From: Macrostomum lignano
Taxonomy: Eukaryota
Assembly (NCBI GenBank): GCA_002269645.1
Contig: NIVC01000866.1
Location: 76,441-140,440 of the forward strand
Reading direction: 5' to 3'
Length of the DNA stretch: 64,000 nucleotides
This document shows, piece after piece, positions 36,523 through 43,664 of the stretch; within the stretch, counting starts at the first letter, position 1, and every line of letters starts with the position of its first letter. The notes under the pieces are model-generated. The model made no database searches, was not told the DNA's origin, and saw only the letters and a program-made list of their open reading frames with translations. The position numbers and the translations under genes were made by a program.

Positions 36523-39500
36523 CTACCCATAGCAGCTAATGGGGTGCAGGACGCAGCGGAAGTCGTTGCGACGCCGTTTCCATGCTCTTTTTCGACCTCC
36601 TCCCGGATTCATTGACTGTTGAATCCGCGGCCAGCCTACGCGGTCTTCGGGCTCGGCCAGGTCAGCGGCCAGGGCCCCAGCTGTGCCGGCACCCTCGGAC
36701 TCCTGTTGCTTGGCTGCGATGTTGCGAACTGCCTTCTGTGGGTGTTCAGGTACGAGGCGATTTTGATAAGAGTTAAGCAGTTAGGATTATCTCCCTCTTC
36801 TAAAATGCAGCCTGCACCCTCGGCAGCCTTTTGGCCATAGACAACTCAGAAAGTTACCCGGATCAGTACAGATATTAGAAGCGATAAGGAGGGAGTGAAG
36901 CCTTTAGGCCATAGACAACTCAGAAAGTCACCCGGATCAGTACAGATATCGGAAGCGATAAGGAAGGAGTGACGCCTTTAGGCCATAGACAACTCAGAAA
37001 GTCACCCGGATCAGTACAGACATTAGAAGCGATAAGGAGGGAGTGAAGCCTTTAGGCCATAGACAACTCAGAAAGTCACCCGGATCAGTACAGATATCGG
37101 AAGCGATAAGGAAGGAGTGACGCCTTTAGGCCATAGACAACTCAGAAAGTCACCCGGATCAGTACAGACATTAGAAGCGATAAGGAGGGAGTGAAGCCTT
37201 TAGGCCATAGACAACTCAGAAAGTCACCCGGATCAGTACAGATATCGGAAGCGATAAGGAAGGAGTGACGCCTTTTGGCCATAGACAACTCAGAAAGTCA
37301 CCCGGATCAGTACAGATATCGGAAGCGATAAGGAGTGAGTGAAGCCTTTAGGCCATAGACAACTCAGAAAGTCACCCGGATCAGTACAGATATCGGAAGC
37401 GATAAGGAGTGAGTGAAGCCTTTAGGCCATAGACAACTCAGAAAGTCACCCGGATCAGTACAGATATCGGAAGCGATAAGGAAGGAGTGACGCCTTTTGG
37501 CCATAGACAACTCAGAAAGTCACCCGGATCAGTACAGATATCGGAAGCGATAAGGAAGGAGTGACGCCTTTAGGCCATAGACAACTCAGAAAGTCACCCG
37601 GATCAGTACAGATATCGGAAGCGATAAGGAGTGAGTGAAGCCTTTAGGCCATAGACAACTCAGAAAGTCACCCGGATCAGTACAGATATCGGAAGCGATA
37701 AGGAGTGAGTGAAGCCTTTAGGCCATAGACAACTCAGAAAGTCACCCGGATCAGTACAGATATCGGAAGCGATAAGGAAGGAGTGACGCCTTTTGGCCAT
37801 AGACAACTCAGAAAGTCACCCGGATCAGTACAGATATCGGAAGCGATAAGGAAGGAGTGACGCCTTTAGGCCATAGACAACTCAGAAAGTCACCCGGATC
37901 AGTCTTAATCGATAGATATCGGAAGCGATGGAGAAGGTTTGACGTTGCATATCATCTCCGAGTGCAGCTCAGCCACCGTTCCAGAAATTTTATGCACTTT
38001 TAAATCATCCTGCATGAGCTTCATTACTAAAAAACTGAGTTCTTATAGCAGCTAGTGCGAAGATTCTATGAAATAAAAAACTTAACAAAGTTTTCGCTCA
38101 AAAGTCACGTAAATGTGAAAAAATAGAATCCAAAAAGATTTTTAACGCATTTCAAGAGCAGGCAATCTTTTTTAGTTTCTTGTGGAGTTCTTGATCATTA
38201 TTAATCAACAACAAACAAACAAACAAATAAACAAACTGACTAACTAACTAACTAACTAACTAACTAACTAACTAACTAACTAACTAACTAACTAACTAAC
38301 TAACTAACTAACTAACTAACTAACTAACTAACTAACTAACTAACTAACTAACTAACTAACTAACTAACTAACTAACTAACTAACTAACTAACTAACTAAC
38401 TAACTGACTGACTGACTGACTAATTTAAGTTATATATACTTTTCTACTTTTTTCCTCAGCACATTGCACCAAGCCCGCATATCAGCAAACTGTGATAAAG
38501 AGCTGCTCAAAGCTTGAGCATAGAGGCCTCAATTGTTTGCACTTGCATTTTTAAGCCAACATTGACACCCCAAGGGTTTATTGGCGCAGATCCAGCTCTC
38601 TGACAAGCAACCCGCACATACACGAGGCTTCTTCTAGAGCCCTACCTGAACTGCTTCAGATTCTGAGGGTATCGGGTAACACTTCAGCGCAGAGTTCCTG
38701 AATTTTTGGCTACAAGAGGGGAATTCCAAACATATCGCCGCGTTTGTGAGTCATTCATCCCGATTTGCCTTCAGCCTGTCATGCCTTTAGGGGTTGACCT
38801 TGATGTACTATTGGAAATGGGATAAATTATTTGATATGAAATTGGAAATTACGAAGTTCTTTTGTCTATATTCTATTCTCTATCTTCTATCATATATTTT
38901 CTATATCCCATGTTTTATCATCTGTCCTCTATCCTCTATATCTTATATTCTATCCTCTATATCCTATATTCTCTATCCTCTATATCCATTATATCCTATA
39001 TTCCAACCTCTATATCCTATATTCTATCCTCTATATCCTCTATATCCTATATTCTATCCTCTATATCCTATATTCTATCCTCTATATCCTATATTCTATC
39101 CTCTATATCCTATATTCTATCCTCTTACAGGGGTTGGCAAACTCCGGCCCGCGGGCCACATGCGACCCACCAAGCCTCTATCCGGCCTTCGGATCCTTTG
39201 AAACTTCGCAAAAGTCTCAAGGTTTGTGTCTCTTCTCAGCTCTTTTCTCTAATCTCCTCTCTCCTCTCTTCTTTTCTCTCTCCTCTCTCTCCTCTCCTCT
39301 CCTCTTCTCTCTTCTATCCCCTTTCCTCTCTCCTCTCCTCTTTCTTCTTTCCTCTCCTCTCCTCTCTCATTTTCTCTCTCCTCTCTAATCTCCTCTCTTC
39401 TCTCTAATCTCCTCTCTCCTCTCTAATCTCCTCTCTCCTCTCTACTTTTCTCTCTTCTCTCCTCTCCTTTCCTCTCCTCTCCTCTCCTCTCTTCTATCCC

Positions 39501-42500: not shown

Positions 42501-43664
42501 GGAGAGAGAGAGGAGAGAGGGAGAGAGAGGAGAGAGGACAGAGGGAGATAGAGAGAGGAGAGAGGGAGAGAGAGGAGAGAGGGAGAGAGAGAGAGAGAGG
42601 AGAGAGAGAGGAGAGAGAAGAGAGAGAGGCGAGAGGGAGAGAGAGAGGAGAGAGGAGAGAGGGAGAGAGAGAGGAGAGAGGGAGAGAGAGGAGAGAGGAA
42701 GAGAGGGAGAGAGAGGAGAGAGGGAGAGAGAGGAGAGAGGACAGAGGGAGATAGAGAGAGGAGAGAGAAGAGAGAGAGGAGAGACGGAGAGAGAGGAGAG
42801 AGGAGAGAGGGAGAGAGAGAGGAGAGAGGGAGAGAGAGAGGAGAGAGGGAGAGAGAGGAGAGAGGAAGAGAGGGAGAGAGAGGAGAGAGGGAGAGGGAGA
42901 GGAGAGAGAAGAGAAGGAGAGAGAGAGAGAGAGAGAGAGAGAGGAGAGAGAAGAGAGGGAGATAGAGAGAGGAGAGAGGGAGAGAGAGGAGAGAGGACAG
43001 AGGGTGAGAGAGAGGAGAGAGGGAGAGAGAGGAGAGAGGACAGAAGGTGAGAGAGAGGAGAGAGAAGAGAGAGAGGAGAGACGGAGAGAGAGGAGAGAGG
43101 AGAGAGGAGAGAGGGAGAGAGAGAGGAGAGAGAAGAGAGGGAGAGAGAGAGGAGAGGGGGAGAGAGAGGAGAGAAAGAAGAGAGGGAGAGAGAGAGGAGA
43201 GAGGGAGAGAGAGGAGAGAGGAGAGAGAGAGGAGAGAGAAGAGATAGAGGAGAGAGGGAGAGAGAGAGGAGAGAGGAGAGAGGAGAGAGAGAGAGAAGAG
43301 AGGCAGAGGGGAGAGGAGAGAGGGAGAGGAGAAAGAGATTAGCCGTGCCATTGTGGGAGATTTGCAAGTTAGCTCAGCCGCATTGATGTCACTAATATCA
43401 ACAATATACCGAAGAATAATATCAAGAAACCGGGACAAAGAAGAGAGCCTGTATGTCCGTTGGTGAAATTTTCCTGAACAAAAGAAAAATTCAAAGCATT
43501 CAAAGCAAGCAAGCAAAACTCTGGCCTCTCTAAAATGGCGGCTGAGCGAGTGGCCACAGGCTCACCCAGTAGGAGTCTCGAACGTCCGCGGGCTGGGCGC
43601 TGATGCAGATTGACAGCAGGCTGGCCAGAAGGCACAGCGAGACAGCAGCTGCCTCCAGTCTCAT
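36523..43664 (-). CDS. AstC: Allatostatin-C/somatostatin-family neuropeptide precursor, ~103 aa, 2 coding exons
   Basis: Exon 43664-43566 encodes MRLEAAAVSLCLLASLLSICISAQPADVRDSYW (signal peptide) with donor GTGAGC in phase 0. Exon 36735-36523 encodes KAVRNIAAKQQESEGAGTAGALAADLAEPEDRVGWPRIQQSMNPGGGRKRAWKRRRNDFRCVLHPISCYG*. Multibasic sites precede a C-x6-C PISC motif and a terminal Gly. AATAAA on the minus strand at 36221-36216. The exact acceptor is inferred. Confidence 0.8.
36835..37905. repeat. 74-bp minisatellite, ~14.5 copies
   Basis: Unit CCATAGACAACTCAGAAAGTCACCCGGATCAGTACAGATATCGGAAGCGATAAGGAAGGAGTGACGCCTTTAGG; starts at 36835 and 36909. No unique spacers. Confidence 0.95.
38215..38422. 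repeat. (CTAA)n microsatellite flanked by (CAAA)n and (CTGA)n
   Basis: Read directly. Confidence 0.95.
38880..39125. repeat. ~21-bp AT-rich minisatellite (TATCCTCTATATCCTATATTC)n
   Basis: Read directly. Confidence 0.88.
39128..39653. mobile_element. hAT/Charlie-like MITE with an internal (CT)-rich expansion
   Basis: TIRs CAGGGGTTGGC(AAACT) / (AGCTG)GCCAACCCCTG. Left subterminal CGGCCCGCGGGCCA is typical of Charlie-type ends. No clean TSD recoverable. Confidence 0.75.
40085..40370. repeat. 42-bp pyrimidine-rich minisatellite
   Basis: Read directly; translates as LLYLPYLLLISTSS repeats. Confidence 0.9.
41570..43335. repeat. Complex (GA)-rich polypurine satellite
   Basis: Read directly; explains the 701-aa and 601-aa LSPLS ORFs. 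Confidence 0.95.

Follow-up and report, generated by a model that had tools for sequence, protein, structure and literature searches.

Precursors of the allatostatin C (ASTC) type carry one copy of the peptide, placed at the C terminus after a basic cleavage site (PMC8786951; PMC9048919), and in protostomes the Cys loop is invariably six residues long (PMC9048919). Asn is found in the loop of most of these peptides and FxP in many, and the loop opens with an aliphatic residue in molluscs and annelids and with an aromatic one in arthropods and nematodes (PMC9048919; PMC8851493). Arthropod members have a PISCF motif (PMC11959706), and the Aplysia AstC SHYSSMCMFNVVACY has been validated on its receptor (PMC8786951). 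ASTC genes carry an intron of phase 0 in the N-terminal or proregion part of the coding sequence, which is the sole coding intron in spiralian genes (PMC7536072; PMC9048919). The peptides are without a strictly conserved motif, and convergence of short motifs is possible (PMC9048919; PMC8851493). Recent work regards the ASTC-type and somatostatin-type families as paralogues (PMC8851493, PMC9048919), and a description of AstC as the protostome counterpart of somatostatin, used in a sequence-only reading of the DNA studied here, is dated.

Flatworms are absent from the species list of one comparative study (PMC8851493) and are not mentioned in the text of another on somatostatin and ASTC evolution (PMC9048919). 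The flatworm neuropeptide literature that we examined lists no ASTC ligand and gives no ASTC receptor, and a literature search for "PISCY", or for AstC with Macrostomum or Platyhelminthes, found no report (the McVeigh 2009 and Koziol 2016 surveys lay outside its scope). The gene identifier Mlig008357 was likewise absent from the literature search and from one searched supplement. Here we describe this Macrostomum lignano gene, which has one untranslated and two coding exons and probably encodes an ASTC-type prepropeptide.

Results

Gene structure and existing annotation

The window, a 64-kb stretch of contig NIVC01000866.1, holds two coding exons on the minus strand that join into a protein of 103 amino acids (Table 1). 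The sequence-only reading had placed a minus-strand frame ending in GGGRKRAWKRRRNDFRCVLHPISCYG before its stop, which proved correct to the base in both coordinates and letters. It had also placed a 99-nt signal-peptide exon about 6.8 kb upstream with a phase-0 donor, and this exon was confirmed, with GTGAGC directly 3' of it. The last coding exon reads KAVRNIAAKQQ...GGGRKRAWKRRRNDFRCVLHPISCYG and closes with TAG at 36525-36523. The sole coding intron falls between codons 33 and 34, ten codons past the predicted signal-peptide cleavage site, and its acceptor (...cacccacAG) ends at 36736. Further downstream, a poly(A) signal, AATAAA, lies at 36221-36216 on the minus strand.

Table 1. Features of the M. 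lignano gene, with positions counted in the window
Feature	Position	Strand	Details
5' UTR exon, untranslated	48104..48229	minus	126 nt; tblastn of the UniProt model's N-terminal extension
Intron 0, within the 5' UTR	43667..48103	minus	4,437 nt; acceptor AG at 43668-43667
Start-codon exon	43566..43666	minus	CDS 43664-43566, 99 nt, 33 codons, MRLEAAAVSLCLLASLLSICISAQPADVRDSYW
Predicted signal peptide, residues 1-23	43596..43664	minus	Hydropathy and inspection
Coding intron	36736..43565	minus	6,830 nt, phase 0, GT...AG
Last coding exon	36523..36735	minus	213 nt; proregion, cleavage sites, peptide, Gly, stop
Processing sites (putative cleavage)	36568..36594	minus	RKR (36594-36586), AW, KRRR (36579-36568); read from sequence
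Predicted bioactive peptide NDFRCVLHPISCY plus amidation-donor Gly	36526..36567	minus	Read from sequence
3' UTR	36200..36522	minus	~300 nt; 3' end approximate

The joined protein equals the GenBank "hypothetical protein BOX15_Mlig008357g1" at 100% identity and 100% coverage, and GenBank holds the identical model three times, on three contigs (PAA58860.1, PAA75712.1 and PAA90366.1; BOX15_Mlig008357g1/g2). The annotation of this assembly used RNA-seq with genome-guided transcript assembly and TransDecoder (PMC5730564); the GenBank models were built from RNA-seq transcripts, and the proposed in-frame join of 43566 to 36735 is therefore transcript-derived. An older, independent model in the same protein cluster, UniProt A0A1I8HYA1, carries UniProt's name "Allatostatin C" and has the same coding join together with a spliced 5' UTR exon. 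We mapped this third exon by tblastn to a site 4.4 kb upstream of the start-codon exon, with an exact junction (...GCAG followed by CCATG, giving ...AACAAM) and a GTGAGT donor at 48103-48098 directly after it; the 5' end given here marks its least extent, as transcription may begin further upstream.

The gene is thus real and transcribed, and the earlier description of it as hidden stands only for the list of start-to-stop, prokaryote-style open reading frames, from which it is indeed absent because exon 2 lacks a start codon that could be used and the frame of exon 1 continues into the intron. Both the gene model and the allatostatin-C name are already in public databases.

As the earlier reading had noted, the coding exons are short and lie among satellites. 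We confirmed these as tandem arrays of 74-bp units (36825-37903), GA-rich sequence (41575-43338) and 14-bp units (43745-46791). The coding intron contains the 74-bp, 42-bp, GA-rich and other tandem repeats, and intron 0 is largely made up of the 14-bp satellite and a 26-bp array (47451-47795). A non-functional or chance reading frame, whether from a mis-assembled transcript, a pseudogene or annotation noise, might be suspected in such satellite-rich DNA, where exons are very short, the precursor has no Pfam match and the GenBank product is named hypothetical. We consider this highly improbable, as the model is transcript-derived, two independent annotations agree on the exon join, splice sites are canonical, a poly(A) signal is in place, three genomic copies retain an intact, identical protein with synonymous change only, and the motif lies well above chance.

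Three genomic copies

The three copies are recent duplicates. They encode an identical protein and differ at a single synonymous position in 312 coding nt, an ATT/ATC change in the Ile codon of PISC in the last exon; the start-codon exon has no differences. Overall, the loci are 93-98% identical, with gene spans of 7,142, 6,039 and 5,135 nt and a coding intron of variable length. Most flanks differ by 1-6%, against this single coding difference (Fisher p = 0.03, 0.001 and 0.01). This conservation argument is weakened because some non-coding stretches are equally conserved: the 5' UTR exon, present in all three copies with 0-1 differences per 126 nt, intron 0 over its initial 300 nt, and the 3' UTR. 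The 500 nt 3' of the stop differ by 0.4-0.8% between copies.

Precursor and predicted peptide

The precursor begins with a predicted signal peptide, in which MRLE, containing Arg2, leads into the hydrophobic core AAAVSLCLLASLLSICIS and then A, ahead of QP. The Kyte-Doolittle mean is 2.29 across residues 5-22, and none of the 15-residue windows starting past residue 25 exceeds 0.58; cleavage, placed by inspection, probably occurs between ISA and QP. At the other end, the precursor reads ...RKRAWKRRR/NDFRCVLHPISCYG before the stop, with a single C-terminal peptide behind a multibasic site. Cys94 and Cys101 bracket a loop of exactly six residues, VLHPIS, and no second C-x6-C unit is present elsewhere in the 103-aa protein. 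A search of the 64-kb window for a tandem AstC paralogue, as in arthropods, found no further AstC-like C terminus in any frame.

The first residue of the loop is Val, an aliphatic residue in the spiralian pattern. Pro is retained with Ile-Ser behind it, as in the PISCF of arthropods, and the P-I-S-C tetrapeptide is identical to the arthropod core. His stands where Asn is usual, however, and Leu takes the place of the Phe in FxP. The PISCY variant with VLH replacing YFN that had been proposed is what we read here, as the VLHPIS loop, a terminal Tyr and then Gly. Our analysis likewise supports the two-exon join, the predicted signal peptide, the proposed cleavage and amidation, and the assignment to allatostatin C, the last in agreement with the UniProt name. 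The phase-0 intron early in the coding sequence, the only coding intron of the gene, is common to somatostatin-type genes and therefore supports the superfamily, not ASTC specifically.

The signal peptide would direct the 103-aa product into the secretory pathway, where a prohormone convertase may cleave after KRRR and possibly after RKR too; M. lignano is known to have a homologue of prohormone convertase 2 (PMC4490696). The C-terminal Gly would then be converted to an amide and a Cys94-Cys101 disulfide would form, giving the cyclic 13-residue peptide NDFRCVLHPISCY-NH2 with a computed monoisotopic mass of 1562.71 Da, or alternatively an N-terminally extended 19-residue form of 2416.23 Da. By analogy with arthropod, molluscan and annelid ASTC peptides, release may be from neurons or endocrine cells. 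The target might be a rhodopsin-gamma GPCR of the ASTC/somatostatin/opioid group, and the signal would be modulatory and probably inhibitory.

Sequence searches and chance expectation

The ASTC-like motif is far beyond chance. When the window was simulated 300 times under a first-order Markov model, a loose pattern (dibasic site, C-x6-C, aromatic residue, optional Gly, stop) had an expectation of 0.03 per 64 kb, falling to 0.003 when Pro is required at loop position 4, and the pattern with PISC occurred in 0 of the 300 simulations.

Statistically significant homology was found neither by Pfam, word-indexed search or phmmer nor by hhalign against AstCCC. The Pfam scan of the precursor gave no match, and a query of a word index covering 5.8 billion proteins recovered only the precursor itself. 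With phmmer, no true relative was found among 1.84 billion representatives; besides the self-match there was one 1,318-aa protein of TWKRLRNVFSCIF repeats, which we rejected as a homologue because four repeated matches inflate its score. In a profile search with AstC peptides and the precursor, 120 of the 120 matches listed were arthropod AstCCC/prohormone-1, with neither PISCF-type nor spiralian AstC precursors among them. Alignment to AstC-family precursors, a comparison already named in the sequence-only reading, brought the C termini into register, with RCVLHPISCYG opposite AstCCC QCAFNAVSCFG, but was not significant (hhalign against a profile of 25 arthropod AstCCC precursors, P = 0.0068, probability 5.6%, 11 columns). 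A protein search with a chimera of two published Aplysia AstC-precursor peptides yielded no candidate and therefore no spiralian AstC profile. The putative homology to ASTC rests on the motif and the gene structure.

These null searches would be expected if the gene encoded a real secreted flatworm Cys-loop peptide that is lineage-specific, acts on a different receptor and is not an ASTC orthologue. Such convergence, which we regard as unlikely but deserving of some weight, would also fit the replacement of the usual loop Asn and Phe, the possibility of short-motif convergence in a family that the literature describes as having "no strictly conserved motif" (PMC9048919; PMC8851493), and the literature search, which found no ASTC ligand in flatworms and included a 2018 paper stating that allatostatin ligands had yet to be reported from them (PMC6114109). 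What speaks against it is that several independent features coincide: C-terminal position, loop size, P-I-S-C, a lone aromatic residue following the second Cys, a multibasic site before the peptide and one phase-0 intron just past the signal peptide, with even the loose motif expected by chance just 0.03 times per 64 kb. We favor the assignment to ASTC.

Discussion

Our findings suggest that M. lignano has an ASTC-type gene, and we lean, by a modest degree, toward regarding its product as the first platyhelminth ASTC-type ligand in the comparative literature, with the PISC core and perhaps amidation as ancestral protostome features. If this is true, the "arthropod" P-I-S-C core, which is replaced in molluscs and annelids, would occur here in a gene of spiralian structure and together with an amidated end like that of AstCCC; such a mix would point to Pro-Ile-Ser-Cys, and perhaps an amidated C terminus, as ancestral in protostomes. 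ASTC signalling would moreover become accessible in a transgenic, RNAi-amenable, early-branching flatworm, and a validated M. lignano ASTC peptide would close a phylum-level gap and reveal ancestral loop residues. The gain is incremental, because the gene model and even its name were already public.

Other known Cys-loop families share some of the features described here. The two cysteines and predicted amidation, and a C-terminal position and phase-0 intron that are common to SS and ASTC precursors, might point to a protostome SSRP-like peptide or one of the CCHamide/excitatory-peptide type. CCHamides also have C-x6-C spacing; they sit directly after the signal peptide, however, and run several residues beyond the second Cys to ...GH-amide, whereas the M. 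lignano peptide lies at the extreme C terminus and ends one residue past the second Cys. The protostome SSRP-like loop has four residues and an invariant WK (PMC9048919), in contrast to the six residues without WK found here. Membership in either family is contradicted by the sequence and was rejected, and we give this explanation very little credence.

Among the ASTC peptides themselves, the arthropod PISCF-type AstC (...RQCYFNPISCF) resembles the M. lignano peptide in having a single C-terminal peptide in a precursor of ~100 aa with a signal peptide, a basic cleavage site before the C-x6-C disulfide loop, one aromatic residue after the second Cys, and an identical P-I-S-C tetrapeptide. It differs at loop positions 1-3, where M. 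lignano has V-L-H instead of Y-F-N, so that neither the common Asn nor the FxP Phe is retained. The M. lignano peptide also ends in Tyr instead of Phe, is followed by a Gly that predicts amidation and has a shorter N-terminal arm (NDFR), and its gene is without the extra phase-2 intron of ecdysozoan ASTC genes.

Arthropod AstCCC, or "prohormone-1" (SYWKQCAFNAVSCF-amide), is alike in several respects: its precursors are of similar size (85-125 aa), the peptide lies at the C terminus and has a six-residue loop, and a Gly for amidation comes after the aromatic residue. Its loop is AFNAVS compared with VLHPIS, its proregion motif ..ALxNYLFAKQ..RLR...DLQRKR has no counterpart in M. lignano, and the proregions do not align. 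The SYWKQCAFNAVSCFG(K) C terminus of AstCCC/prohormone-1 is absent, and only the C-x6-C-aromatic-Gly frame is shared.

Spiralian AstC, represented by Aplysia SHYSSMCMFNVVACY, comes from the same superphylum and shares the aliphatic first loop residue, the terminal Tyr and, as compared by published features, the single C-terminal peptide and a proregion phase-0 intron as the only one. Molluscan and annelid peptides have V, L or I where M. lignano retains Pro (PMC8851493), and Aplysia AstC is not amidated, whereas amidation is predicted from the Gly in M. lignano. Somatostatin, urotensin and SSRP-like peptides differ in their loops, which are of 4 residues in protostome SSRP-like peptides and UII and of 10-15 in SS/CST, compared with six in M. 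lignano, and VLHPIS contains neither Trp nor Lys and no WK. The predicted M. lignano peptide is probably of the ASTC type, and not of the somatostatin type.

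Gene model and public annotation

On re-reading of both coding exons and their splice sites, all coordinates that the sequence-only reading had given for an allatostatin-C-type (AstC) precursor proved right; the satellites said to surround the exons were confirmed as tandem arrays, as was the absence of the gene from a mechanical start-to-stop ORF list. The sole coding intron, of 6,830 nt with a phase-0 donor, follows codon 33. The joined 103-aa protein matches 'hypothetical protein BOX15_Mlig008357g1/g2 [Macrostomum lignano]' (PAA58860.1, PAA75712.1, and PAA90366.1) with 100% identity and 100% coverage, and the copy contained in the window, L001, lies on NIVC01000866.1 of assembly GCA_002269645.1. 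For this assembly, the GenBank annotation was built on RNA-seq transcripts assembled with genome guidance (StringTie, TACO, mapped de novo transcripts, and TransDecoder; PMC5730564), and the proposed two-exon join therefore equals an already public, transcript-derived gene model. Moreover, UniRef100_A0A1I8HYA1 (146 aa), which falls in the 90% cluster of the 103-aa protein, carries the source name 'Allatostatin C n=3 Tax=Macrostomum lignano'. Contrary to the earlier claim, the gene is thus not hidden from annotation; its model and name are known and its family assignment is on record.

The 43 extra N-terminal residues of this UniProt model are 5' UTR read-through. They map to an upstream exon, in which one homopolymer indel separates the assemblies, and joining the end of that exon (...TGTGCAG/GTGAGT) to the acceptor ...ctcggcAG/CCATG at 43666 gives exactly the ...AACAAM of the UniProt model; the gene therefore begins with an untranslated exon, followed by a 5' UTR intron (intron 0) of 4,437 nt that is largely a 3-kb 14-bp satellite. 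An AATAAA lies ~300 nt downstream of the stop. Immediately 5' of this untranslated exon is a TATA-like sequence that, with two CCAAT-type motifs, represents a possible core promoter; the TATA-like sequence precedes the start of UniProt-model coverage by no more than a few bases.

Features of the AstC gene and of the rest of the window
Feature	Positions	Strand	Remarks
TATA-like sequence	48244-48231	minus	CATAAATAAAAAGG
CCAAT-type motifs	within 48231-48300	minus	gccaatgag, cattggcc
Untranslated first exon	48229-48104	minus	43 extra residues of UniProt model map here; 5' end a minimum
14-bp tandem array	43745-46791
Start-codon exon, CDS	43664-43566	minus	MRLEAAAVSLCLLASLLSICISAQPADVRDSYW; GTGAGC donor directly after
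GA-rich tandem array	41575-43338
74-bp tandem array	36825-37903
Coding-intron acceptor	last base 36736	minus	...cacccacAG
Last coding exon	36735-36523	minus	KAVRNIAAKQQESEGAGTAGALAADLAEPEDRVGWPRIQQSMNPGGGRKRAWKRRRNDFRCVLHPISCYG; stop TAG 36525-36523
Proregion end	36586-36609	minus	...MNPGGG before RKR
AATAAA	36221-36216	minus
Tandem-array sites, examples	72-1208, 18307-22073, 34529-35148, 41411-43516, 43745-46829, 54379-55714
WD40 exon-like frame	2693-3277	plus	E = 1.6e-6
705-aa open frame	9929-12046	minus
P-element transposase HTH match	13284-13895	plus	E = 2.6e-4
Neighboring annotated gene	28072-32587	plus	690-aa GenBank product
499-aa open frame in that gene	30388-31887		Pro-rich
99-aa single-exon gene	57297-57596	minus	called in GenBank

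Three genomic copies

The AstC gene occurs on three contigs of the assembly (gene spans of 7,142, 6,039, and 5,135 nt), in keeping with the chromosome duplications of the DV1 line (PMC5730564). The protein is identical in 3/3 copies, and their coding sequences differ at 1 site in 312 nt, a synonymous ATT/ATC difference at the Ile codon of PISC. Relative to L001, the 500 nt preceding the ATG exon diverge by 4-5% (2.4% between the other two copies, L002 and L003); the coding intron diverges between copies by 3-6% at its 5' end and 1-2% at its 3' end, and long cross-locus alignments have 93-98% identity. The lower divergence of coding than of flanking sequence (Fisher p = 0.03, 0.001, and 0.01) points only suggestively to purifying selection, because conservation nearly equal to that of the coding sequence is also seen in the untranslated exon, over the initial 300 nt of intron 0, and in the 3' UTR.

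Other features of the window

The window is largely made up of long, strongly strand-skewed tandem arrays, which give spurious long ORFs in several frames, and their abundance fits the 15% of simple and tandem repeats in the M. lignano genome (PMC5730564). The 99-aa gene reads MKWQFALGLLLCVALAVYA, then an acidic proregion and a very Arg-rich tail, KFRIRFGRRRYFRRRYFRRRNFRRRYFRIRRRFFRRRYHFYG and stop; its product, with a signal peptide, a cationic aromatic C terminus, and a terminal Gly, has no Pfam match and resembles a secreted cationic peptide, of the antimicrobial or another type. The 705-aa frame, which lies in a 68% G+C island (about 45% elsewhere) and has Gln-, Ala-, and Pro-rich low-complexity runs, likewise has no Pfam match and probably belongs to a neighboring gene as a large coding exon. 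No Pfam family was found in the annotated 690-aa gene, one exon-like frame carries a WD40 repeat, and the transposase match is weak, below the Pfam cut-off.

Family assignment and predicted processing

None of the sequence searches gave significant homology. A Pfam scan of the precursor had no match, and phmmer against 1.84 billion representatives returned only the precursor itself and a repeat artefact, which we rejected as a homologue. In the alignment to a profile built from 25 AstCCC/prohormone-1 precursors of arthropods, a check that the sequence-only reading had proposed, RCVLHPISCYG is in register with QCAFNAVSCFG, both C-terminal, but the statistics are weak (P = 0.0068, probability 5.6%). 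Lack of significant search homology is usual for short neuropeptides, and assignments in the field draw instead on the motif, the architecture of the precursor, and the structure of the gene.

On these grounds, the predicted precursor is a good match to ASTC. ASTC peptides are single copy and C-terminal, with two Cys six residues apart (PMC8786951), the loop in protostomes is 'always' six residues (PMC9048919), and molluscs and annelids have an aliphatic residue at its first position (PMC9048919; PMC8851493); the M. lignano loop is V-L-H-P-I-S. The AstC-type assignment agrees with loop size, C-terminal position, and phase-0 intron. When the window was simulated 300 times under a Markov model, a loosely AstC-like C terminus was expected 0.03 times per 64 kb and one with Pro at loop position 4 0.003 times, while one with PISC occurred 0 times.

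We infer that the signal peptide (mean hydropathy of its hydrophobic core, 2.29) would be removed at about ISA/QP and that a convertase would cut after KRRR; M. lignano is known to have a PC2 homologue, whose expression pattern is neural (PMC4490696). Conversion of the terminal Gly to an amide and a Cys94-Cys101 disulfide would then yield NDFRCVLHPISCY-NH2 (1562.71 Da), or a 19-mer (2416.23 Da) if RKR alone were used, and the mature peptide may signal through a GPCR of the ASTC/somatostatin group. Because GGG immediately precedes RKR, an amidated linker peptide could also be made; cleavage would leave a Gly-extended terminus there, making ...SMNPGG-NH2 a possible second amidated product of the proregion.

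Comparison with known systems

A 2018 study stated that allatostatin ligands were not yet reported in flatworms (PMC6114109), flatworms are absent from a large ASTC/somatostatin data set (PMC8851493), and the running text of a 2026 review does not include ASTC among its polyclad peptides (PMC13551398). We found no report of a flatworm ASTC ligand in the searchable literature, whose scope excludes the two main flatworm neuropeptide surveys, and this gap is not proven. The residual interest is modest and lies in an arthropod-like PISC core, with a predicted amidated end, in a spiralian.

The protostome somatostatin-related family is ruled out by its four-residue loop with WK (PMC9048919), in contrast to VLHPIS, and describing ASTC as the protostome counterpart of somatostatin, as the sequence-only reading did, is dated, since the two types are now viewed as paralogous (PMC8851493, PMC9048919). 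Most ASTC peptides have Asn in the loop and many have the Phe of FxP, whereas the M. lignano peptide has His and Leu. Its P-I-S-C is identical to that of the arthropod PISCF core (PMC11959706), its terminal Tyr is shared with Aplysia AstC, whose precursor also gives rise to an amidated peptide analogous to the candidate ...SMNPGG-NH2 (PMC8786951), and the terminal Gly for amidation is present throughout arthropod AstCCC.
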